The notes: generated from the sequence alone by a model not told the origin. DNA of 64,000 nucleotides from Amoeboaphelidium protococcarum X5 (GCA_023515725.1 JALDTO010000235.1:1-64000), one strand, 5' to 3'. Shown: positions 36,134-52,396, counted from the first letter of the stretch. Made by a program: numbers and translations.

Positions 36134-38677
36134 TCAAACCATCAAGTTCTCATTCTAAACCTCATTGACATCAGTTCTATCCTTGAACAGTGGATTGTCG
36201 TGAGCGGAGAACTGAGCAGCGTACAATGGATTCGTAGCAGCGGAGGTAGCATCAGCTCCAAAGATGTAGTTGATGTCACGAGCAACTGCACGACTACGAC
36301 GCAGCATGAACAGACCGAAAGCACTAGCAACAGCAGCAGTAGGAGCCAATACAGCCATCATGGAGATGTTGGATGGGTTGCTGGTAGAAGCCGGAGTACC
36401 GTTAGAGCCCTATGGAGCATCGGTAGCAACAACCTTAATAACAGCTGGAGTAGCTGGAGCAACTTCAAAGTTCACTGGAGGAGCAGCAACATTTTCGTCT
36501 GGAGGCATGATGAACACTGCACCAGCGCCACTCTCAGATCCGGACTCACCAACAGGGTTGTTCAACTCTTCCATCAAATCAGGGATGACAAAGTCCTTGA
36601 AGTCATTGGTTGGAGTTGCAGTTTCACTCTCAGTTGTAGTAGAAGTGCTAGTTTATTCAACTGCAGTTTCAGTCTCAGTAGCAGAAGTGGTGGTCTCTTC
36701 AGCGCTAGCACTGGAAGTAGTAGTAACGTCATCAGAGGCAGTAGAAGTGCTAGAAACTTCTTCAGTGGTAGAAGTGGTAGTTGGAGCTTCAGTGGTAGAA
36801 GTGGTAGTTGGAGCGCTAGTGCTAGATTCAGAGGTAGAAGTCTCTTCAGCGACGGTAGTAGAAGAAGAGGTGCTTGAAATCTCCTCAGTAGAGCTAGAGC
36901 TAGTAGAAGTAGTAGTCTCAACTGCAGCAGTAGAAGAGCTGGTGGTGACAGGATCAACAGTGCTTGAGCCAGAAGTGACTACAACTTCAGTGGTGGAGGT
37001 AGTCTCAGGGACAACAACCTCAGTAGTAGATGTAGTCTCAGGTGCAGCAGTGGAGGATGAGGTCGTGGTGGTGCTTGAGCTAGTTTCAGGAGCAATACTG
37101 ATACTAGTGGAAGTAGAAGTGCTTGAAGAGGTGGAGGTTGGCACCACAACTACACTTGAGGACGTGCTAGTGCTAGTGGAAGTTGGAACTACAGCTACAC
37201 TTGAGGATGAGCTAGTAGAGGTGCTAGTGGAGGTAGGAGTAGAGGAGGTAGAAGTGCTAGTACTAGTAGAGGTTGAAGTAGTAGTCGTGCTAGTTCTAGA
37301 ACTAGTGGATGTGGATGTCGAAGTAGAAGTGCTGGTACTACTGCTAGTTCTAGAACTAGTGGAGGTGGATGTGGAAGTAGAAGTACTGGTACTACTGCTA
37401 GTTCTAGAACTTGTGGAGGTGGAGGTAGAAGTGGAGCGACTAGTTGTGGTGGTGTCAGGCACGAATACACACTTCTGCTGGACATAGCTAGTAGTAGTCA
37501 CAAACTGCTCAAAGAAAGCATCGATGATAGCCTTGTTCTTTGCATCAATGAAGGTGTTAATATCAAACACTCTCATGAAGTTACCACTCTTCAGCATACG
37601 AGCCTGCAGAGAGTTACCCAAACCCAGAGCATTCAAAGCAGTCAAAGTCTTCTGACCATCAAAGTTGGCAAAAGTTTGCTAGTTCTGGCTCTAGAAGTTA
37701 GGATGACCAAACTGGTAAGAGACAACGTTAATGTTATCAGCATTGCTCAGCTTCTTGGTCAAGAAGTAATTGCTAGTGGCAGAAGAGTAGCCGCTGATAG
37801 GGTACACCTGATTAGTGTCAGCAATGAACTGCTCAGTGCCAGCAATCATGCTGACCAGACTGTTGACGATAACACCATTATCAGCCAACATCTTTGCAGT
37901 CTCAACGATCTCATTCTCGAAACCATCAGTCAGGGTCAGAGCATTGCCCTTACGATAGTAATTCTGCAGACCAGACAAACTGTAGTAACCAGCTTTAGTC
38001 TTACGATTACCAGAGTGATAGTAGATGTAGTCAGTTCTTTCGACAGGACCAAAGCCAGGCTCAAACTGAGCGAAAATGTTGTACAACCTGGTTAAGTAAC
38101 ATTTTTTAGCACCAGAGTCGTACAGCTAAACACAGAAAGCATCATCAACACCCTGATTCTTTGCATAGTAAGACGACACGGTAGGTAGGTCAGAGTCCTC
38201 ATCGGTAGCATGTAAAAAGACCTTAGTTGCACCTGTGCGCCAGTCCAGTATACAGTCGGCAGCATCAACCTTCTTGTCACAAGCCTTGTTCATGTCTCTA
38301 CCCTTGTTGGTCAGAGCCATACGCATAGCCTCAAAGGAAGCCTCCTAACCACCAGAAGTACAGTCAATAGCCTCCAGAGTAGAAACCAGCTGACCATGGT
38401 TTACGGTGAGAGGCAAACGAATCTCAGGTTTACCACCAAAGACAACCAAAGAGTATTGAGCATCAATCTTACTGGATTGAATCTTGTTAGCAAATTTCTT
38501 CATACCGTGTATGACACCCTTAATCTTGTCACACATGGATCCAGACGCGTCGACGAGGAAGAGGAAGTCAGCCTTCTGCATCTCTACAGTCTCAGTGACA
38601 GTCTCATCCTTGCACACGTAACCAGCACTAATAGTCTGAGCAATTAATAAAGCGGCTAAGCTCGTTAGCAATTTCAT
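36134..38677 (-). CDS. Integrin-beta/Sib-like type I surface protein, paralog A (signal peptide, vWA, Thr/Ser stalk, TM, NPLY/NPLF tail)
   Basis: MKLLTSLAALLIAQTISA; FLVDASGSM (MIDAS); GG(Q)EASFEA; DWRTGATKVFLHATDED; TM ...AFGLFML-RR; TNPLY..DNPLF. 847 aa. Confidence 0.85.
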
Positions 38678-39801
38678 TATTAATGTTACGATTGTTATTA
38701 GTTGTTGGGAGGATTGTGATAGGCGGGAGGATGAGAAGGACTCTGAAGTGTTTGGCGAGTGGTTACGACATTGATTTCAGCCATATGCTACGTAATCTGG
38801 TGCTGATTGGATGCTTTTGGACACGAAGATTGGATGGTTATTTATTTGTATGTGTGGAAGGAATATTCTAGAAAGATTAGAGATTGAAGTTTAAGTGAAA
38901 GGCATGTACAAAAATAGCCTATTAGATGCCTTTCAAGTGCGTGATATTTGGACTTCTACCGTGGACTTCTGCCGAGGTTCATTGATCTTGGTCGCTTTAA
39001 CAATGCCGCAGTTACAGCTAAGGGTCCAACCAAACTGAATCAGTGTGTCCACCTATAAAACATTGTATCTTAAATTATCTTATCTTATCTTGTCCCAATT
39101 AACAAAAATCTTAAGATTTGAGAGATAAGCATTAGTTTAGATGACTACGCTTTGTGAGATTTTGTTACCGGTCATAGAAGATTAGCGCGTTGCTGTGATC
39201 GATTGTGACCGGGTGGGATAAGACTGGGCCAATAAGCAGATGTGATGTTGTTGAAAAGGGGGAAGCATGAAATCTCACCTCCACCTACAAAACTGTTTTA
39301 CAAAATACGCACTCAATGAAAGCAATGACCATTTAAGCTGAAAGTTGCGGAATCCTTTTTAGGATAATCGCGTTTCCTGGCGCCGATATATAGGGCGATC
39401 ATTAAGAGCTCTCGGGGTGAAAGTAACTAGAATTTTCTGATAAAGTAAAATGGCACGTATCTCTCTGTATCATCTCTTAAAGCCTGTGAGGCAATCTACT
39501 TTTACTCGACTGTTTTAAGTCATACACTTGACACTTATTTTGACACTTATTTTTAGCAGAAATATTGTGGCTGAAATCAAGCAAATTGACAGTCTTGACA
39601 GTCATCTAACTCTTATACGACGTGTTCATACCTTTGCCTTCGCACCATTAACAGCTATGCGATGCGTTCAAAATATCAAAAATAGAAATGGAAGTTTTAC
39701 ATCCATCATTCATTCATTCATTATTCATCTTTCATCCCTATTATTCTTCTTCATTTCATTATTCAACATTTATCCCAACTAAAGCTCAGGCCAGAGCTTA
39801 T

Positions 39802-41281
39802 TCAAACCATGATGTTCTCAGTTTGAATCTCACCATCATCGGTTCTGCTCTTGAACAGTGGATTGTCGTGAGCAGCGAACTGAGCAGCGTACAACGGATT
39901 CGTAGCAGCAGATGTGGAATCACCTCCAAAAATGTAGTTGATGTCACGAGCAACTGCACGACCACGACGCAGCATGAACAGACCGAAAGCAGCAGCAGCA
40001 GCAGCTGTTGGAGCCAAGATTCCAATAGTAGCGTTGGATGAGCTATTATTGGAGGATGTAGACTGATTAGCACCCTATGGAGCGTCAGTAGCGACAACCT
40101 TAACAACAGCAGGAGTTGCTGGAGCAACTTCAAAGTTAACTGGAGGAGCAACAACATCATCCGAAGCAGGCATGATAAAAACTGGCGCAGCACCTTATTC
40201 AGATCCAGACTCACTAATTGGAGGACTGTTCATCTTCTCAAACAGCTTAGGGATGACAAAGTCACGGATTACCTTTGGAGAAGGAGATGGAGTTTCTTCC
40301 TCTTCCTCAGTCTCAGATGGGAGCTCTTCTTCAGGCTCAGTTGGGACCTCGACCTCCTCTTCAGGTTCGGAAGGAGCTTCAGTTTCCTCAACAATTTCAG
40401 TCGTAGAGGTAGCAGTTTCCTCCTAAATTTCCTCGGTGGAGGTTGTAGTTTCCTCAGCAACGGGCTCAGAAGAGGTAGTAGTCTCTTCAACAACAGGCTC
40501 AGAGGTAGCAATCACTTCAGATGAGGTGGTAGCTTCTTCAACAACCTCAGATGTGGAACTAGTCTCCTCAACTGCCTCAGTAGTAGTTGTGGTGATGACT
40601 TCCTCGATGGTGCTTGATGACGTTGTAGGCTCAATCACGACCTCTGAGGTAGAGGAAGTTGCCTCAACAGAAGACTCAGTAGTGGACGTCTCAGCAGCAG
40701 GTGTAGAGGAGCTAGTAACGTCTTCAGTAGTAGTAGTGGTGGTGGTCTCAACAGGAGTAGAGCTTGTCACTGCTTCAGTAGTAGAGGTAGTACTTTCCGT
40801 GGTTGACTCTGAAGTAGACTCAACAGCGCTAGAGGAAGAGGTAGTGGTTGGCTCGACAATTACAACAGAGGAAGTAGAAGTTTCAACTACAGCAGAGGAT
40901 GAGCTAGTACTTGTAGGCTCCACAATAGTGGATGACGTGATAGAAGTAGTTGTTGGTTCCACAGTGGTTGAGGTGGTTGATGGCTCAACAGTAGCAATAG
41001 AGGTGCTAGTAGAGGAACTAGTGCTTGAGCTAGTGCTAGTGGAGGTGGAAGTTGGAGAGGCAGAGCTTGTGCTAGTAGTAAACGCAGCGGTGGAGGAGGA
41101 TGTGATAGCAGCAACAGAGCTACTGGTGGAGGTAGAGCTAGGAGTAGTTAAAGTCCTGGTGCTAACAGTAGTGGAAGTAGGACGTGAGGAGGTGGTAGTA
41201 CTACGAGCAGGTGTGGTGGTAGTAGTGGTAGTTCTACGAGTAGAAGTAGTAGTGGTGGTAGTGGGTGTGGTAGTAGTACTA

Positions 41282-41326
<45 letters not shown>

Positions 41327-41327
41327 C

Positions 41328-41378
<51 letters not shown>

Positions 41379-42672
41379 TAGTGGTGGTAGGACGTGAGGT
41401 GGTGGTAGGACGAGAGGTGGTGGACGTGGTGCGCTTAGCGGAAGTGGTGTCAGGCACGAATACACACTTCTGCTGGACATAGCTAGTAGTAGTCACAAAC
41501 TGCTCAAAGAAGGACTCAATGATCGCAGTGTTCTTTCCGCCAATGAAGGTGTTAATGTCAAACACTCTCATAAAGTTACCACTTTTCAGCATACGAGCCT
41601 GCAAAGAGTTACCCAAACCCAAAGCATTCAGAGCAGTCAAAGTCTTCTGGCTATCAAAGTTGGCAAACGTTTGCTAGTTCTAGCTTTGATAGTTAGGGTG
41701 GCCAAACTGATAAGCAGCAACGTTTATGTTATCAGCATTACTCAATTTCTAAGTCAAGAAGTAATTACTCGTGGCAGAAGAATAGCCGCTGATAGGGAAC
41801 ACCTGATTAGTATCAGCAATCAATTACTCGGTACCAGCAATCATACTGACCAGACTGTTGACGATAACACCATTATCAGACAACATCTTAGCAGTCTCAA
41901 TGATCTCATTCTCAAAACCATCAGTCAAAGTCAGAGCACTACCAGTACGGTAATAATTCTGTAGACCAGACATACTATAGTAACCTGCCTTATTCCAAAA
42001 ATTGCCAGGGTAGTAGTAAATGTAGTCAGTCTTTACGACAGGACCAAAACCAGGCTCAAATTGAGCAAAAATGTCATACAGACTGTCCAGATAGCACTTC
42101 TTGGCAGCAACATCATACAACTGCGTACAGAAAGCATCATCGACACCCTAATTCTTCGCAAAGTAAGATGACACGGTAGGCAGGTCAGAATCCTCATCAG
42201 TAGCATGTAAAAACACCTTAGTAGCATCAGCACGCCAGTCCAGGATACAATTAGCAGCAGACACCTTCTTGTCACAGGCCTTGTTCATGTCTCTACCCTT
42301 GTTGGTCAGAGCCATACGCATAGCCTCAAAGGAAGCTTCCTAACCACCAGAGGTACAGTCGATAGCCTCCAGATTAGATACCAGTTAACCATGGTTGGAA
42401 GATAAAGGTACACGAATCTCGGGCTTACCACCAAAAAGGACCAGAGCATACTGAGCATCAATCTTGCTAGATTGAATCTTGGATGCAAACTTCTTCATAC
42501 CCTTGATGACACCATCAATCTTCTCACACATGGAGCCAGACGCGTCAATCAGGAAGAGAAAGTCAGCCTTCTGCACCTGGTTGGTTTAGGTCACAGTTTC
42601 ATCAGAGCACACGTAGCCGGCACTAATTGTTTGAGCTATTAACAATGCAGCTAAGCTGGTTAGCAATTTCAT
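39802..42672 (-). CDS. Integrin-beta/Sib-like surface protein, paralog B
   Basis: Same architecture as paralog A, 956 aa; long (ACT)n poly-Thr run. Confidence 0.85.
41281..41389. repeat. (GTA)n microsatellite encoding the poly-Thr stalk; shorter equivalent at ~51053-51113
   Basis: Seen directly; length differs between paralogs B and C. Confidence 0.9.
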
Positions 42673-43885
42673 CTTATTAACAGAAACGTAGTTTAGATAC
42701 ACAGACAGACGTAAGAGGAGTTGATTATAAAAGAGAAGGGAACAAGGCAGACTAGTCTTTAACTCAAGTGGCCCATGTTCGATATGCGCGCCACAATCCA
42801 GCTGATTGGACAACATACGATGATGCGATTCGCTCGCAATGAAATTCCCGAACTTTTATTTCAGATTTCGCGATCAGTTTCATTTCCATAGCAACGCTAA
42901 ATACCAGTAAGGGCTGTACAAAACAAAAAACGAATTTGTTACTCTATTAAACACGGCGCGCACCCGCGGGTGCGCGCCATGCCGTCCCGAACCGCTTTGT
43001 CCTTGATTAATTATACCCCATCAGAGCCGGAAATGAGCTGAAACGTCGAGGTCATTGAATCAGTTATGAAGTGGAAACAGTTGAGCTCTTGGCAGATGTT
43101 AAGAACGTTATTTTACTAATATGCTTTACCGCTAAAAAGCATAAAAGAGCCGAGCTTATCTTTAATTCTGGTTAGAGCGCTGCGAAACAACTAGATATTT
43201 GTTTATAAAAGATTATGGGCAATTTAAGGGAATTGCAGCCGTATCGAGGAGAGAATTATTGGGAATTTGTGAAGTCCTGTGACCAATTTCATATTTCAAT
43301 GCTAAAAACGCCGATATCGATATGCGATGCATACATCACTGTAGCCTGTGGCTGGAAATACGCGGATGAAAAGACATCAACAATGATCAGTGATCTTTTA
43401 GCAAATAGATTTTTTCTAATCGTATCCTACAATCACCATTACAGTAGCGAATTCTCTTTGGTTTAGTCTCAGCGGGGCGAATCTTCGCGTATAGAGCGTT
43501 GAGTGGACTGAGATCTCCGCAAAGTTATATCATGACTAAAGTTCATGATATGTTACCATTGTGAGCATCCACGACTAAGTTTAACCAACTCTAAACACCA
43601 TACTGATAATTGCAGATTTAGCGTCGCAATAACGCATTTTTAGAATAAATCGAGTTTTGCGAGCATTTAACATCCTGTTATACGTTCTATAAAATCAACT
43701 CTTCTGAATTAGCATGATCCACAACACTTGTCTTCAGTTTTCGCGACTATGAACCAGCCAAAATAGAAATTGTTCATTCGCACGTCGAAAAGGATAAAGA
43801 AGCACAAGCAGATCAGTGCCAACTTATGAAGGCTTTGTGAAATATTTCTTGGTTGTGTTGATACCGTGTCTTGGAGCTCAATGTC

Positions 43886-45073
43886 ATAATGAAATTTAAA
43901 AGAATAAAGGATCACTAAAAGTATGGCTCGATATTGATTAGGACACAATGACGCGTAATGCTTTCACCAGTTAGCACGTAAATTCATTGACTTAAGTGAG
44001 ATTTCCCAAAAAGTTATGATGTAAGCCCAACCGCCTATAATTATCTGACCACTATGTACGGCTTACAAAGATCTTGCATGGCTATTAAATTTGGGCTTAT
44101 GGACGAATATAAGTTGAAGGTCTATGAGATAATATATGAGTAACTTGAGAATTTAAATGAAAATCTCTTTAAATAATTGCATAATTTTAGCTCATTTCGG
44201 AGGCTATCCAACCAGATTAAAGACTGCTGGTACGTTTTAAAGAGCTTTCATACCTTTACTTCACGTATGTCACATATTGTCTATACGCGTATTAAGTATT
44301 GTACCTGCTCATATATGGGCCAATTCTGTCGCAATCATAAAATGCGCATAATTTCATAATGAACTAGTGTTTTCTGCCTAAAATGATCCATGGGCTATGT
44401 CCCGTGATCATAAACTGCCTACACAATTTCCATCCATCTGAGTGCAGCTCTGGCATGAGTGCGTTGTAGTACATAAAGAGTTGAAGTATACAGTCAAGTA
44501 ATTGGTTATGGATTCGTACAAAATAGGATGTATCACAATTCATTCCACGAATCTTGCTCAGATCAATTAGATAATCATCTATCTCTATCAGATCTGGTAC
44601 TGAACGTCTCATTAAGAAGTTACATTGATCACGCTTGACAAGAACATCAGACCTCAGCATGTGTGTTATTTACCATTGTTTCAACCGCTATCTTTCATGG
44701 AGTGCGCGAGTAACAGGCTGAACCCAGCGTACAGTATTTCTTGTTTCAATAAAAGCAATGCATAGTATGATCTCTAAGCTCTGACAACATCTATTTCTGA
44801 ATCAATTATGGAAAGGCAGTCGTAGTGGCCAGCAATTTTCTCATTGAAACGAAACTTCAGCTCACTATCGGGCATTAAATCGCCAGCCATGTGTAAAGAC
44901 GTATTATTAATTAAGTATGTCAGCAAGGCATACACAGTCAAAAATAAAGAAAATAATGCTAAGGCTCGTGATACATGGTAGAATAAAGCGAAGAATATCG
45001 GACGGACAGCATGTATGATACCAGACAAGTCCAAAGCGCGGAAATATTCAACGACATTGTTTGATGCAAGCAC
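43886..45073 (-). pseudogene. Unidentified frame-disrupted ORF(s) inside the insertion
   Basis: Two consecutive long TGA-free stretches; no family motif recognised. Confidence 0.25.
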
Positions 45074-45939
45074 TCAAATTCTCCGTAGTGATTTCTAGGA
45101 ATAAGTGGTGTCGGACGCACAAAAAAGACAGCAGACCCTCACCTTTTTCGCGGTCCTAGCAACGACAACTATATAAAGCAAACAACGAAATCTAATCCTG
45201 AAGCCCGAAAATTAACGGTTCGGGAATATAGAGCTTTTGTGTGCAGTTGTATGAGGTGAAACCCATTGCCTAACGACCGGTGTCGCTAAGGGCAATGTCG
45301 TAGTTCACTGCTCGACGACCGGGGTCGCTATGGCCTTAGCTAATTTTACATCCTTGCTGAACGGCTTGAAATTTATTCCGATCTGTGTCTTTTTGTAGCA
45401 GGAAACAAAGTGAAACTAGTGTTCAACAAGCACTAAATCTTTGACTATACAACTCCTTTTAGCTCTTTTAACACCGATGATTTTGCCTGCCCTTGACTTA
45501 TGACATATACCTTGTCAATTTAGGCATATTGGCATCGAGTATCATTTGATTGCAGATTAATAATACACACTAATGCTTATGGCAGTCGCTAAATAACAGC
45601 AGTAACCAGTCCTTACTTAGAAGTGTGTTTGCTCTTGTGGTGTCATTAGCTGAGCACGTCAACGACCTCTCGGTCAGGAACGTAACGCATGATAGAATTT
45701 TACGAAATTTGACACGGTTTAACCATATCACGTAATACAAATATATGTTATTCGCACTTTATATCACTTTTGGAGTCACTGTTTAGTTCGTTGTTGTCCC
45801 TTTACTTCTCCTTCGTCATAAACGATCCATACGACTTTTAAAAAATGCGTCAACAATCATCAGTAGACAAACTCATCTAATTTTCTTGTAGAAAGCGCAA
45901 ACTCTCAGTCTCCGATAATGTTCCAATTATTGATGGTTA

Positions 45940-48420
45940 TTAAAATGTGTCAGCCTTTGACGAGAAACATCCTCCTCAAGGTACTTAGAGTTGAGGTTAA
46001 AACTTAACTTGGGAGCAGCAGCCTGATTTTACAATTGTAGTCAACTTGTCAGAACCAGCTGCTATAAGTGCACCTAACTCCGTAATAGAACCATTTATCA
46101 TCGGAAATGTTCAGGCCAATATACACTTAGCAATTTGGTTGTGACTGGTTAAAATAGAGAGTTTTAACTCAATCGAGGAATGATTCGTTTCACCTCGCAA
46201 TTTATTACACTGATCCTTATCTAACGTGATGACAATGGGGATAATAAGTTCAAGGATATATGGTTGACATAGTTCGACTGGTTGGAATATGTTTTTGATT
46301 CGCAGTTATTCTTTTGTTTCCATTGCAGGATGTTTCCTGAGGCGTGTAAGAAGAATGACGCTTTCTGAGTGGTTGGTGACAGAAGGTTTAGAAAGCTCAC
46401 AGATGTTCTGAAAGCTCATGACAAGACGGCAGCGCATATTGCAGCAAGCACCAAGTTAGAGGATTTCGAAGGGCGGTTTTCTAGGATGGAATTGGTATTG
46501 GACTTTATATATACTATGCTGATATTGAGTAGGAAAGAATGTCATTAATTTAAACGAATCGCACAACTGTGGTATCTCTATTCGATCTAATTAGAAGTAT
46601 TGCCGTATCTCAGCAGCCCTTGAGACCACTCTGATTTCATCTCAAACATGTTTATCGTTAAGAAGAATAATGCGAAGCATCCGCTTGATATGAGACCTGT
46701 TGCTGATTATAAGTAATTGAATGATCAATGTCTCACTTGAGGCAATGATGAATCTGAAAGCAGTGACAACAAAAGCTTGTTCTTGAATCTGTATAATCAT
46801 TCTTAACGCAATTGTTAATCTATAAAGGAATGAGATGATAGACAGCCTGCGCATGATCAATACACCTCTTCTGAATTTTAAAATGAAATGATTACAGTAC
46901 TGGGAGGTATGGTTGAAACTTCAATCGTTTCAGTGATCAATTAAAACTAAATGTTTGCGCTGATTGCCGATGAGACAACGGATATCTCCTTAAAGAGCCA
47001 CAGTTCTACAGTAGTTAAATATGTCTACAACAATAATATTTAAGAGAGGTTGCTCAATACGACCCCAGTAGATTGCACTTCATGCGTGTCTATTTTTAAC
47101 CATATCAGTGCTGTGTTGCATAAAACTGGATTGCCTTTCTAATGGATCCGGGTCAATGTAATGATGTGCCGCTGGAGAGGTGGCTCAATCTGAGGGACGC
47201 AACGGCGATGAGATCAGAAAGAGTTGCATTGGCAGAAGCCGATAAAAGATCAGTCTCTAATAGCTGTTTATGTCTGGCTTACTGCCCATCGGTTTAATTT
47301 GGCTTTAGCAGAGTTTGCAAAAACAATGTGGATATCATGATCTGCTTATAGGTACTATGGAAGTGTTTATAGGCATTTCTGTTATTCTAATCAGAAGAAA
47401 GCGTAGCTGTAGAGTTTAGCTAAATCTAGTAATATTGTTGGCTCAACTGCTATTTCATCTTAGCGTGACACGCGGTGGTCTTCGCGTTGAAGTAATATTG
47501 CTAATTTTAGGAGGATCTTGGCTCGTTTTGCAACATTATGTCTCGACTCCTTGCAAGATGATATCGTGGCCTGCTCTGGTTTTTTCAACTCTATCTGTGA
47601 TATCAAGTTTTTGCAGCTCCTGAATTTTCTTGATGGTGTGTTTATGTAAGTGGATATTCTATACTAAATCTTATAAGGCAAGACAACGGATTCATCTAAA
47701 GCCATCACCGCAATCAAGTGTCTTAGAGCTTATATTAATGACTTTATTCTTCGCAATAACGTTATGTTAAAGACTTAGAAAAGGTAGCGTCTTAGTAGTT
47801 TGCTGAATTGAAATTGTTGTTGGAGTAACACAAGAACAAGTTTTTACGTGGTGAAGCCTCTGATCCTCATGCTAAAGGCAACTTTGATTTAAATGACTTT
47901 TATATCCACTTGCAATCAATTGTTAGAAGAATTAGATTTTAGATTTCTGACTTAGAATTAGTAGTTAATGATGGAGATCGCATCTTTAATTGATTTTACT
48001 ACAGCTTATCCTATAGGGTATCAATTCAGTTGTATTAATGAATAGTTTTTTTAGATGTTACGGAGCTTAAAAGTTAGTGGAGATTTGCTCGTGGTGTTAT
48101 AAAAGATAAGAGAATAGCTAGTAAGGATCCATCCCTGGAAAGAAGTGATCAACTGGGTATAGAATTTGCTCTTAAAGAATTGCGTTTGGGAAAGTTGGCT
48201 GATTAAGAGAGCTCTCTCATTATTCACTCATTCCAGTGGCGATGTTGACGATTGGCCTCCGTCTGAAAATTTGTTTGATTAGCTCCTAGCTAATTGCCCT
48301 GTTCTGCTCTATTCTCAAATCCGAGCCATCTGTTTACTTATCCCAGTTAAAGCATTGCTCCATATTTGCTATGTCTTCTACTGTATTATAACAATGCCTT
48401 AGTACCAGTACTATGCAAGC
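45940..48420 (+). pseudogene. Degenerate hAT-superfamily transposase (ZnF-TTF + DUF4371-type)
   Basis: KFKDIWLT(Q)FDWLEY...FFCFHCRMF (46247-46336); FALIADETTDIS (46954-46989); GQCND; AHRFNLA; frameshifted TRW-S-SR. Multiple TGAs and frameshifts; ends approximate. Confidence 0.8.
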
Positions 48421-48556
48421 TGTTAAGCCTGTAAATCTAATCTCGATAACGACTAGATTATATATTGCGATTATCTGTACGTTACCTGCGATCTGGCTTC
48501 ACTAAAGAGCTGTTGAAGTAAAATGCCCGATATTTGAATCAAGATACGATGTACTC

Positions 48557-48637
48557 CGAGCGCGTTTCACAGCCAGCGGATTGCCAAAATCCTTCTGGGC
48601 TGAAGCTCTCTAGTATGCTGTCGTCACCAAAAATTCG
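48557..48637 (+). mobile_element. Ty1/Copia integrase fragment
   Basis: RARFTASGLPKSFWAEAL(Q)YAVVTKN matches the Copia integrase motif GLPxxFWAEA. Confidence 0.65.
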
Positions 48638-49363
48638 TAGCTCGCTCAGCTCAGCTTTTATCGGTATTCGTTCTTTCACAAACGTCTATCGATCGACATC
48701 GTTCTAGGATGTCGGTATAATAACATACCGCAGGGAGAAATAACAATGTCGATCGATAGCCCAGTCTTTTGCACCTGAAGTTGAGCTTCCAAAATCATTT
48801 CAGTCAATTAATGTATCGCTTTATAACAAAATTAGACGTTATTATTGCGGCGTTGTGGCGTAATAGTTCATTCAACATCCCTGTGACGTAATAGCGCATT
48901 GTTCTCCGCACAGTACTGTATCATTGTTCTCCGCACAGTACTGTATCTGTAATGTTATTAAAACCACGGTCAAGGCTTTACTTTATGCGATAAATAATTC
49001 TTGTTCAAGGCTTTACTTTATGCGATATTTTGCAAAACAACGACAATCTTTATTATGCAAATATCGCATTTCATTATACAATAGCCGCCCGTCGTGTTGT
49101 TGATCAGAGAAAAAAATACCAGTTCGGGGCAGGCCCTCATCACACGATTGATGGACGAGTGCGCTCGCGCTTTCGACAACCAACGTTAGCGGGCCTAAAT
49201 TCTTAATGGCAACAGATCAACGGATCCTAAATTATACTCAACCAATCAGCAAAGTAAAATCAGCGTTGATGGTAACAACCAATCAGCAAAGTAAAATCTA
49301 CACATTAATTCATTCATCATTATTTCATCATTATTCATTCCCTAAGCTCAGGCCAGAGCTTGT

Positions 49364-51053
49364 TCAAACCATGATGTTCTCAGTTTGAATCTCACCATCA
49401 TCGGTTCTGCTCTTGAACAGTGGATTGTCGTGAGCAGAGAACTGAGCAGCGTACAACGGATTCGTAGCAGCAGATGTGGAATCACCTCCAAAAATGTAGT
49501 TGATGTCACGAGCAACTGCACGACCACGACGCAGCATGAACAGACCGAAAGCAGCAGCAGCAGCAGCTGTTGGAGCCAAGATTCCGATAGTAGCGTTGGA
49601 TGAGCTATTATTGGATGATGTAGACTGATTAGCACCCTATGGAGCGTCAGTAGCGACAACCTTTACAACAGCAGGAGTAGCTGGGGCAACTTCAAAGTTA
49701 ACTGGAGGAGCAACAACATCATCCGAAGCAGGCATGATAAAAACTGGCGCAGCACCTTGTTCAGATTCAGACTCACTAATAGGAGGGCTGTTCAGTTTCT
49801 CAAACAAGCCAGGGATGATAAAGTCACGAATAACCGCCTGAGTAGGAGATGGAGTTTCTTCCTCTTCCTCAGTCTCAGATGGGAGCTCTTCTTCAGGCTC
49901 AGTTGGAAACTCGACCTCCTCTTCAGGTTCGGAAGGAGCTTCAGTTTCCTCAACAATTTCAGTCGTAGAGGTGGCAGTTTCCTCCTAAATTTCCTCGGTG
50001 GAGGTTGCAGTTTCCTCAGCAACGGGCTCAGAAGAGGTAGTAGTCTCTTCAACAATCTCAGTGCTAGTGGTGGTTTCTTCAACAGCAGCAGAGGTAGTTT
50101 CCTCAACAATTTCAGTCGTAGAGGTGGCAGTTTCCTCCTAAATTTCCTCGGTGGAGGTTGTAGTTTCCTCAGCAACGGGCTCAGAAAAGGTAGTAGTCTC
50201 TTCAACGATCTCAGTGCTGGTGGTGGTTTCTTCAACAGCAGCAGAGGTAGTAGTCTCTTCAACAACAGGCTCAGAGGTAGCAATCACTTCAGATGAGGTG
50301 GTAGCTTCTTCAACAACCTCAGATGTGGAACTAGTCTCCTCAACTGCCTCAGTAGTAGTTGTGGTGATGACTTCCTCGATGGTGCTTGATGACGTTGTAG
50401 GCTCAATCACGACCTCTGAGGTAGAGGAAGTTGCCTCAACAGAAGACTCAGTAGTGGACGTCTCAGCAGCAGGTGTAGAGGAGCTAGTAACGTCTTCAGT
50501 AGTAGTAGTGGTGGTGGTCTCAACAGGAGTAGAGCTTGTCACTGCTTCAGTAGTAGAGGTAGTACTTTCCGTGGTTGACTCTGAAGTAGACTCAACAGCG
50601 CTAGAGGAAGAGGTAGTGGTTGGCTCGACAATTACAACAGAGGAAGTAGAAGTTTCAACTACAGCAGAGGATGAGCTAGTACTTGTAGGCTCCACAATAG
50701 TGGATGACGTGATAGAAGTAGTTGTTGGTTCCACAGTGGTTGAGGTGGTTGATGGCCCAACAGTAGCAATAGAGGTGCTAGTAGAGGAACTAGTGCTTGA
50801 GCTAGTGCTAGTGGAGGTGGAAGTTGGAGAGGCAGAGCTTGTGCTAGTAGTAAACGCAGCGGTGGAGGAGGATGTGATAGCAGCAACAGAGCTACTGGTG
50901 GAGGTAGAGCTAGGAGTAGTTAAAGTCCTGGTGCTAACAGTAGTGGAAGTAGGACGTGAGGAGGTGGTAGTACTACGAGCAGGTGTGGTGGTAGTAGTGG
51001 TAGTTCTACGAGTAGAAGTAGTAGTGGTGGTAGTGGGTGTGGTAGTAGTACTA

Positions 51054-51112
<59 letters not shown>

Positions 51113-52396
51113 AGGACGTGAGGTGGTGGTAGGACGAGAGGTGGTGGACGTGGTGCGCTTAGCGGAAGTGGTGTCAGGCACGAATACACACTTCTGCTGG
51201 ACATAGCTAGTAGTAGTCACAAACTGCTCAAAGAAGGACTCAATGATCGCAGTGTTCTTTCCGCCAATGAAGGTGTTAATGTCAAACACTCTCATAAAGT
51301 TACCACTTTTCAGCATACGAGCCTGCAAAGAGTTACCCAAACCCAAAGCATTCAGAGCAGTCAAAGTCTTCTGGCTATCAAAGTTGGCAAACGTTTGCTA
51401 GTTCTAGCTTTGATAGTTAGGGTGGCCAAACTGATAAGCAGCAACGTTTATGTTATCAGCATTACTCAATTTCTAAGTCAAGAAGTAATTACTCGTGGCA
51501 GAAGAATAGCCGCTGATAGGGAACACCTGATTAGTATCAGCAATCAATTACTCGGTACCAGCAATCATACTGACCAGACTGTTGACGATAACACCATTAT
51601 CAGACAACATCTTAGCAGTCTCAATGATCTCATTCTCAAAACCATCAGTCAAAGTCAGAGCACTACCAGTACGGTAATAATTCTGTAGACCGGACAAACT
51701 ATAGTAACCTGCCTTGTTCCTTCTATCACCAGGATAGAAATAAATGTAGTCAGTCTTTGCAACAGGACCAAAGCCAGGCTCAAATTGAGCAAAAATTCCA
51801 TACAGACTGTCCAAATAGCATTTTTTAGCAGAAACATCATACATCTGAGTACAGAAAGCATCGTCAACACCCTGATTCTTCGCAAAGTAAGATGACACGG
51901 TAGGCAGGTCAGAATCCTCATCAGTAGCATGTAAAAACACCTTAGTAGCATCAGCACGCCAGTCCAGGATACAATTAGCAGCAGACACCTTCTTGTCACA
52001 GGCCTTGTTCATGTCTCTACCCTTGTTGGTCAGAGCCATACGCATAGCCTCAAAGGAAGCTTCCTAACCACCAGAGGTACAGTCGATAGCCTCCAGATTA
52101 GATACCAGTTAACCATGGTTGGAAGATAAAGGTACACGAATCTCGGGCTTACCACCAAAAAGGACCAGAGCATAATGAGCATCAATCTTGCTAGATTGAA
52201 TCTTGGATGCAAACTTCTTCATACCCTTGATGACACCATCAATCTTCTCACACATGGAGCCAGACGCGTCAATCAGGAAGAGGAAGTCAGCCTTCTGCAC
52301 CTGGTTGGTTTAGGTCACAGTTTCATCAGAGCACACGTAGCCGGCACTAATTGTTTGAGCTATTAACAATGCAGCTAAGCTGGTTAGCAATTTCAT
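49364..52396 (-). CDS. Integrin-beta/Sib-like surface protein, paralog C
   Basis: Near-identical to paralog B, 1010 aa, with extra duplicated EETT-type stalk units at ~49955-50240. Confidence 0.85.

Follow-up and report, generated by a model that had tools for sequence, protein, structure and literature searches.

The window analysed here is a 64,000-nucleotide stretch of the genome of Amoeboaphelidium protococcarum X5 (GCA_023515725.1, JALDTO010000235.1:1-64000), and within it, at 36134-52396, lie three genes (A, B, and C) that encode proteins with the architecture of type I surface receptors. Each protein comprises a signal peptide, a head with a von Willebrand factor A (vWA) domain at its core, a Ser/Thr-rich mucin-like stalk, a single transmembrane (TM) helix, and a short cytoplasmic tail with two NPxY-type motifs. 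An earlier reading of this DNA from the sequence alone (the original prediction) had described a tandem family of integrin-beta/Sib-like adhesion receptors in a fungal-lineage genome. Our analysis confirms three tandem, co-oriented ORFs (open reading frames) on the minus strand and, by Pfam search, hydropathy, and composition, finds each element of this architecture in all three genes; it qualifies the relationship to integrins and finds the family beyond fungi proper as well.

Three receptor genes with in-frame UAA and UAG codons

Genes A, B, and C are all intronless and share one orientation (Table 1). The limits of the cluster are exact, position 36134 being the final base of the gene A TGA and position 52396 the A of the gene C ATG. 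Genes B and C are 97.8% identical, and gene A is 72% identical to either of them. All three are open only when TAA and TAG are read as glutamine. The nuclear code of this organism reads UAR (UAA or UAG) as glutamine, a code already published for A. protococcarum (PMC6299283), and TAA and TAG can be taken as sense codons here because genes end only in TGA, because CAG or CAA stands at the corresponding positions of paralogs, and because talin, vinculin, and other genes carry the same codons. In all genes examined in the 23.6-Mb assembly, TGA always terminates and only TAA and TAG are found in frame (a further example is listed in Table 1). Variants at the in-frame UAR codons of six close paralogs are CAG (33), CAA (2), AAG (3), and GAG (2). 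The TAG within GG-Q-EASFEA is common to six copies, and a CAR glutamine codon takes its place in two divergent paralogs.

Under the standard code, the 7 to 11 in-frame TAA and TAG codons of each gene would be stops, and the ORFs could then be pseudogenes or misread sequence. We reject this reading and give it practically no chance, as the published code and the pattern of substitutions together rule out decay: the codons concerned are never TGA, they recur in every other gene examined, and they align with CAG and CAA in paralogs. Between the head coding region of gene A and its homeolog there are 52 synonymous and 10 non-synonymous codon differences, and third codon positions make up 28 of the 40 listed differences between the gene A head region and environmental contigs. 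These comparisons show that head and tail are under strong purifying selection, which, together with the recurrence of the whole architecture in other species, argues that the ORFs are not chance. Contigs from a freshwater metatranscriptome and three other runs match the head coding region at 90-97% identity; they cover 37400-38704, with nothing in 38716-38800, and end 27 nt upstream of the ATG, coverage that would fit a transcribed, selected gene in related strains.

The signal peptide has a predicted cleavage site, as read from the sequence, between MKLLTSLAALLIAQTISA and GY. The head consists of a vWA core with two family-specific insertions and eight conserved Cys. A stop-free N-terminal piece matches VWA_2 (6.8e-9, 36.8 bits against a cut-off of 27) and VWA (1e-5, 26.3 bits against a cut-off of 23.8), and a six-frame genome search with PF00092 recovers genes A, B, and C at 5e-7 to 3.5e-6; Pfam finds no domain besides vWA in the stop-free pieces or in family members. 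Window proteins were searched as such stop-free pieces, and the Gln-substituted translation served only for coordinates and paralog alignment. The metal ion-dependent adhesion site (MIDAS) is intact, with D43-x-S45-x-S47, E112 in GGQEASFEA, and D159 in ATDEDSD. The motifs DASGS, EASFEA, WR..ATKVFLHATD, TNPLY, and DNPLF are each present in all three genes.

Stalk length differs among the three proteins (Table 1). A 153-nt (51-aa) tandem repeat at 49943-50248 lengthens the stalk of gene C, and a single related copy lies in gene B at 40381-40533, which suggests that stalk length evolves by repeat gain and loss. The TM segment is a 20-residue hydrophobic helix (Kyte-Doolittle hydropathy 1.8-1.9) with the consensus LAPTAA[VA]A[SA]AFGLFML, and RRSR or RRGR follows it. 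A conserved juxtamembrane block of 80 residues is encoded by all three genes. The tail consensus of the window genes is RR[SG]RAVARDINYIFG..[AS]TSAATNPLYAAQF[SA]AHDNPLFK.... Even with UAR read as Gln, no ORF in the 6.3-kb spacer between genes B and C (43000-49300) exceeds about 260 aa; the spacer may hold an intron-rich gene or a decayed copy, or may be non-coding.

Table 1. Coordinates of the receptor genes, their features, and further genes referred to in the text (window positions for genes A-C)
Feature	Gene A	Gene B	Gene C	Elsewhere in the assembly	Strand	Description and basis
Whole gene	38677-36134	42672-39802	52396-49364		minus	A, 847-aa type I receptor; B, 956-aa paralog; C, 1010-aa paralog; each ATG to TGA (gene A stop 36136-36134); 7 (A, read as Gln), 11 (B), and 10 (C) in-frame TAA/TAG
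Signal peptide (gene A residues 1-19)	38621-38677	42616-42672	52340-52396		minus	MKLLTSLAALLIAQTISAG, same sequence in B and C; sequence inspection, hydropathy 1.78
Head (gene A residues 20-408, 389 aa)	37454-38620	41449-42615	51173-52339		minus	Pfam VWA_2/VWA, blastp to family members, AF2 model of homologue; B and C homologous
MIDAS DASGS (residues 43-47)	38537-38551	42532-42546	52256-52270		minus	Motif inspection
GGQEASFEA (residues 109-117)	38327-38353	42322-42348	52046-52072		minus	Q111 = TAG; motif inspection
WR..ATKVFLHATDEDSD (residues 146-163)	38189-38242	42184-42237	51908-51961		minus	WR, betaD, and MIDAS Asp; motif inspection
Mucin-like stalk (gene A residues 409-692)	36602-37453	40270-41448	49832-51172		minus	284 aa, 72% Ser+Thr (A); 393 aa, 61% (B); 447 aa, 57% (C); composition
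Conserved 80-aa juxtamembrane block	36362-36601				minus	FKDFVIP...PPVNFEVAPATPAV...
TM helix	36302-36361	39970-40029	49532-49591		minus	MMAVLAPTAAVASAFGLFML (A), Ala/Gly-rich
Cytoplasmic tail	36137-36301	39805-39969	49367-49531		minus	55 aa in each gene; in A, RRSRAVARDINYIFG...TNPLYAAQFSAHDNPLF...
Membrane-proximal NPLY	36221-36232	39889-39900	49451-49462		minus
Membrane-distal NPLF	36185-36196	39853-39864	49415-49426		minus	8 residues past NPLY
Short-stalk paralog L007				C155:856123-859479		604 aa, 68-residue stalk
Short-stalk paralog L008				C155:146276-149629		604 aa, 68-residue stalk
Further gene with in-frame TAG/TAA and TGA end				G000:C214:722630-725143		Example of the code across the genome

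Fold of the head and its relatives

The fold of the head was approached through a model made with AF2 (AlphaFold2) of residues 1-385 of P0008, the closest stop-free homologue, which is 40% identical to gene A (predicted local distance difference test, pLDDT, 91.3; predicted template modelling score, pTM, 0.92). The model is a single compact unit that runs from betaA-alpha1-betaB-betaC-alpha2-alpha3-betaD through a first insertion (about 70 residues) and alpha5-betaE to a second one (about 95 residues) and ends with betaF-alpha7. The insertions fall at about 150-220, after betaD, and at about 246-340, between betaE and betaF. On this model, the vWA fold of the head is certain, and many vWA domains give a structural Z of 16-17. 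A Foldseek search placed an Aeromonas adhesin vWA first (7.6e-8), and integrin beta8, beta6, beta1, and beta3 took about 40 of the top 50 places. In a VIA-align comparison, integrin beta I domains, Pactolus included, came out on top (Z 15.8-17.2, 185-210 residues, root-mean-square deviation 2.5-4 Å). The original prediction had proposed structure prediction as a check of integrin likeness, and beta I domains are indeed the best matches (Z 17.2), but generic vWAs are not set apart from them. The beta I preference in the model is not decisive, because Rpn10 (Z 16.1) and a pilus adhesin (Z 15.9) both lie inside the tie margin.

When the family profile was compared with all PDB sequences, only integrin beta6 and beta8 aligned over positions 10-153 (E 1.5e-4 and weaker), whereas generic vWAs (collagen VI, anthrax toxin receptor, alpha-I) aligned only over positions 12-90. 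With a 74-position sub-profile from alpha3 to betaD, 11 of 14 hits were integrin beta8 or beta6, at E 0.36-0.98 and thus not significant alone. The consensus of this sub-profile is C...GQEAGLEAIRM....C.L.WR..A.K.II.ATDEDSDLP, in which C.lsWRsnAKkviilaTD matches IGWRKEAKRLLLVMTD of integrin beta8, and the WR..ATKVFLHATDEDSD block of the window genes aligns to the same beta8 segment. We take E112 of the window heads to occupy the position of the Glu in integrin beta PEGGFDA, where an ordinary vWA has Thr, an equivalence partly backed by the PDB profile search. The motif parallels with the beta I domain noted in the original prediction are thus real.

Membership of either named receptor group is another matter. 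In the family alignment A3 (35 sequences), which is the basis for the model and for the counts of domain matches, VWA_2 and VWA match 30 and 28 of the 35 members. Integrin_beta (PF00362) matches 10 of 35, at best 1.8e-3 and 15.6-17.3 bits against a cut-off of 24.8, over some 60 N-terminal positions at the MIDAS end; vWA_SIBA-E (PF24909) matches 5 of 35, at best 2.2e-4 and 14.2 bits against a cut-off of 27, likewise at the MIDAS end only. A six-frame genome search returned no match to either model, a weak negative in that control genomes gave none either. The same limit applies to Integrin_A_Ig_1, which had no match in the genome and none in control genomes; FG-GAP repeats were not searched. 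These negatives agree with the remark in the original prediction that fungi lack integrins and with the literature on basal fungi (PMC5042518). Pfam shows no PSI, hybrid, I-EGF, or beta-tail domain, the head following directly on the signal peptide and the Ser/Thr stalk coming next. In the homologue model there is no specificity-determining loop, betaB (57-65) and betaC (70-76) being joined by a 4-residue turn. The Asp of the ADMIDAS (site adjacent to the MIDAS) is not conserved in the A3 consensus, and Integrin_b_cyt gives no match to the tail above threshold (E 0.094). We therefore read the head as an integrin-beta-like vWA that belongs neither to the integrin beta family nor to the Sib family; of the label integrin-beta/Sib-like, the architectural part stands and membership does not. 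A feature-based cluster search, whose results are leads only, returned generic vWA clusters and a few 'integrin beta vWA' clusters at 0.89-0.91.

Comparison with known receptors sharpens this picture. With metazoan integrin beta, the window proteins share the vWA fold, DxSxS, the Glu of the second MIDAS element (QEA[GS][LF]EA vs PEGGFDA), the WR before betaD, the MIDAS Asp, a TM rich in small residues, and a tail with NPxY, eight residues, and NPx[YF]. Unlike integrin beta, they lack the accessory domains and the loop named above, have a mucin stalk in place of Cys-rich legs, do not conserve the ADMIDAS Asp, and have no alpha subunit match. Bacterial adhesin vWAs (the Aeromonas large adhesion protein 9das, SpaC, Mfa5, and PitA) rank near the top in both the Foldseek and the VIA comparison and are MIDAS heads with inserted sub-domains, but they are prokaryotic pilus or RTX-type proteins without a TM helix or NPxY tail, at 11-18% identity. 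Relative to the Sib proteins of Dictyostelium, the window heads fail the vWA_SIBA-E cut-off and carry two large insertions of their own, and a Ser/Thr mucin stalk separates head from membrane; the Sib proteins have a long repeat region in this place, as Cornillon reportedly described in 2006. In other respects Dictyostelium SibA-E offer a close parallel, as type I proteins with an N-terminal vWA/MIDAS, a small-residue-rich TM, a short tail with two NPxY-type motifs, and no known alpha partner, in an amoeboid phagotroph that has talin and a MyTH4-FERM myosin and lacks integrin (PMC9197732, PMC3279395, PMC12686525). In SibA, which has a vWA, a glycine-rich TM, two NPxY motifs, and no alpha chain, the membrane-proximal motif binds talin A (PMC9197732, PMC3279395, PMC12686525).

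Relatives were sought with profile A2 (staggered stop-free pieces, residues 112-330) against 1.84 billion cluster representatives. The head delimits a closed family of 71 representatives (E <= 1e-3), of which 38 reach E <= 1e-10; in many of them the match begins near residue 110, which is also the case for the window genes. By blastp, family members align over about residues 16-410 with 25-40% identity (E 1e-86 to 1e-17). Of the 71 clusters, 30 were looked up, and 18 of these yielded organism names. Aphelid members come from Amoeboaphelidium occidentale (KAI3656767.1, KAI3657175.1) and Paraphelidium tribonemae (from a transcriptome), and chytrid members from Synchytrium endobioticum, S. microbalum, Blyttiomyces helicus, Caulochytrium protostelioides, Rhizophlyctis rosea, Phlyctochytrium planicorne, and Polychytrium aggregatum. 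The rumen fungi (Neocallimastigomycota) are represented by Neocallimastix species and Pecoramyces ruminatium, and the Holozoa by one ichthyosporean, Chromosphaera perkinsii (P0064), with the tail NPMY-x8-NDIY. The family is thus found in a fungal lineage, as the original prediction had it, but also extends beyond fungi proper. No Dikarya, animal, or amoebozoan is among the 18 named clusters, most hits being unnamed metagenome proteins, and absence from Dikarya fits the reported distribution of talin (bioRxiv 10.1101/2020.06.12.142943). The Pecoramyces ruminatium protein (P0001) has 3539 aa, and the head profile matches it in five stretches.

All named members are annotated in databases as 'hypothetical' or as 'VWFA domain-containing protein'. 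The family is defined by a head of about 390 aa with the blocks GQEAGLEAIR, C.L.WR...TDEDSDLP, FEP.F.P, NSLQA..L...MR.FDI, and a C-terminal Cys. A crude scan of the 33 members with a detectable TM and tail found the double motif, NPx[YF] followed by N(P)x[YF], in 23, with spacers of 7 (12 tails), 8 (9 tails), or 10 residues (2 tails), typically as [DE]NPLY-x7/8-[DE]NPL[YF]. Every family block, the stalk, the TM, and this tail pattern are present in all three window genes. From these alignments, head, stalk, small-residue TM, and double-motif tail are conserved as a whole and not a coincidence of one genome, and the window genes belong to an unnamed family of zoosporic Holomycota and at least one ichthyosporean. 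Full-text searches of the literature on aphelids and chytrids with integrin, talin, Sib, or vWA found no paper describing such a receptor. The present analysis adds the ichthyosporean member, the fold, the PDB profile evidence, and the sub-threshold integrin beta and Sib scores; the kind of protein, a single-chain, vWA-headed, NPxY-tailed receptor of Sib/integrin-beta type, is known.

A candidate membrane anchor for talin

A candidate talin or other PTB (phosphotyrosine-binding) partner, whose absence would have spoken against the original prediction, is encoded in the genome. A single talin gene, present as two homeologs (C205:12.7-19.6 kb; C155:1064-1071 kb), combines an IRS-type F3 (3e-29), Talin_middle (6e-36), and I_LWEQ (4e-40); vinculin is present at 1e-60. 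The talin F3 sequence runs ...LRRWAAA-NSFTLDFGDY..YYSVQT.EGEKISQLIAGYIDIILKKRK, in a fuller reading ...VPRLLGVTRDSIMRMDAETKEIVKIWPLTTLRRWAAA(Q)NSFTLDFGDYADSYYSVQTNEGEKISQLIAGYIDIILKKRK, and presumably resembles the F3 of animal talin closely, down to the RW of the NPxY pocket. A second IRS/PTB-type hit is a MyTH4-FERM protein (L016, G000:C98:1212465-1215707; also C249:235031). No motor domain was seen at this locus, and the protein is possibly the tail of a myosin. It may also be a further protein that binds NPxY tails, as the myosin VII/talin complex of Dictyostelium suggests by analogy; there, talin A and myosin VII bind Sib tails as a complex (PMC3279395).

Taken together, we think it probable, with considerable room for doubt, that the window genes encode type I surface adhesion receptors whose MIDAS head is connected through the NPxY tail to talin and actin. 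The head would bind a ligand on the substratum or on the surface of the host alga through the MIDAS metal, and the O-glycosylated stalk (68-447 aa) would hold it off the membrane at different reaches. The membrane-proximal NPxY would dock into the PTB-like F3 of talin, and possibly also into the MyTH4-FERM protein. The receptor-talin link to actin would then operate during amoeboid crawling, attachment, and engulfment, in the way that SibA works in Dictyostelium and integrin beta in animals, but with no alpha chain in this case. By analogy with those receptors, talin is a candidate binder of the tail.

Several points limit confidence in this mechanism. The NPxY motif is also an endocytic signal for other PTB adaptors, and the ligand side of the model is putative. 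A complex prediction with talin F3 (as two chains split at a TAG) and a 48-aa tail piece, that is, the 55-aa tail of gene A up to its in-frame TAG, had a score of 0.38, compared with 0.23 in a control, and counts neither for nor against binding. The predicted structure is that of a 40%-identical homologue and not of a window protein, with its in-frame UAR codons. The expression contigs come from related strains and may include DNA carry-over. Finally, the taxonomic range is only sampled, since organism names are missing for most of the 71 family members.

These points leave some room for talin-independent surface mucins or sensors, acting in the glycocalyx, in host recognition, or as a Wsc/Mid2/Msb2-like stress sensor, in which NPxY would serve only endocytosis or sorting. 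The fungal signalling mucins and wall sensors Msb2, Hkr1, Wsc1, and Mid2 have the same O-glycosylated Ser/Thr stalk, single TM, and short tail as the window proteins, but they are Dikarya proteins without a vWA head or NPxY pair and signal through Cdc42/Rho1, not talin. The classical role of NPxY in endocytosis, the rapid variation in stalk length between paralogs, which is typical of surface coat proteins, and a complex prediction that gave talin binding no support all favour such a sensor, whereas the double motif with its 7-8-residue spacer is kept across the family, more than one sorting signal needs, an intact MIDAS is typical of ligand-binding adhesins, and named members occur only in talin-keeping zoosporic or amoeboid lineages, with no Dikarya among the 18 named clusters (30 of 71 looked up). 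We regard the sensor reading as rather unlikely. A true but highly derived integrin beta chain, which would have lost its PSI, hybrid, EGF, and beta-tail domains and its alpha partner and exchanged its legs for a mucin stalk, seems to us unlikelier still, and this alternative concerns ancestry rather than mechanism. It draws on the PDB profile search, in which only beta6 and beta8 align past the generic MIDAS region, on the dominance of beta8 and beta6 among the sub-profile hits, on the place of beta I domains at the top of the structural ranking, on the Glu for Thr at the second MIDAS element and the WR ahead of betaD, on the NPxY-x8-N(P)x[YF] spacing, which we take to be that of beta1 and beta3, and on the holozoan member from Chromosphaera. 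Set against it are the sub-threshold Pfam scores, the empty genome search with Integrin_beta, sub-profile values that are not significant alone, the tie of Rpn10 and pilus vWAs in Z, the missing betaB-betaC specificity-determining loop with insertions elsewhere, and a tail that Integrin_b_cyt does not match. Talin-coupled adhesion could also be combined with shared ancestry with integrin beta I and the NPxY tail; the family would then continue an ancestral opisthokont or amorphean system that existed alongside or before heterodimers, with the ichthyosporean NPMY-x8-NDIY member as a relic, an idea that we offer as speculative and rather doubtful.

The talin-coupled receptor, our preferred reading, would fill a recognised gap. 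Talin, vinculin, and other focal-adhesion scaffolds persist in chytrids, rumen fungi, and aphelids, which have no integrin. Basal fungi are reported to keep the scaffold proteins, to 'invariably lack' integrin, and to have a 'yet-unidentified' functional homologue of it (PMC5042518), and talin, kept in most chytrids and noted as absent from one, may serve zoospore crawling (bioRxiv 10.1101/2020.06.12.142943). The present family is a good candidate for the missing membrane anchor of talin in such integrin-less organisms, because its topology is suitable, its adhesion head is of the metal-dependent kind, its tail conserves two NPxY motifs, and its named members belong to talin-keeping lineages. 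If borne out, this would account for the grip that wall-less zoospores and amoeboid stages, among them those of amphibian and crop chytrids and of pests of algal cultures, have on surfaces and hosts. It would also bring the fungal side of the opisthokonts under the recent finding that talin force coupling is older than integrins (PMC12686525), and would help to decide between common descent and convergence of Sib-like and integrin-like receptors.

Paralogs elsewhere in the assembly

The genome holds eight paralogs, namely the three window genes, three genes on contig C205, and two on C155; a genome-wide search with the TM and tail matched only these eight. The C205 genes (L002-L004, G000:C205:679246-693275) have the same order and orientation as those in the window and encode proteins 89.5-93.6% identical to their counterparts, so that this second cluster is a homeologous or allelic copy of the first. 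Across the paralogs, stalks range from 68 to 447 aa. The short-stalk form on C155 is only about 50% identical overall, with a nearly unchanged TM and tail: AAFGLFMLRRSRAVARDI.Y.F.GD....NPLYA..F...DNPL[FY]. The tails of the two short-stalk paralogs (L007 and L008) read NPLY-x8-NPLY, and their heads have four N-glycosylation sequons, compared with none in the window genes. The three-gene cluster, talin, vinculin, and the short paralog are each present twice, which gives the assembly the look of a genome that was duplicated and has diverged (hybrid or polyploid).

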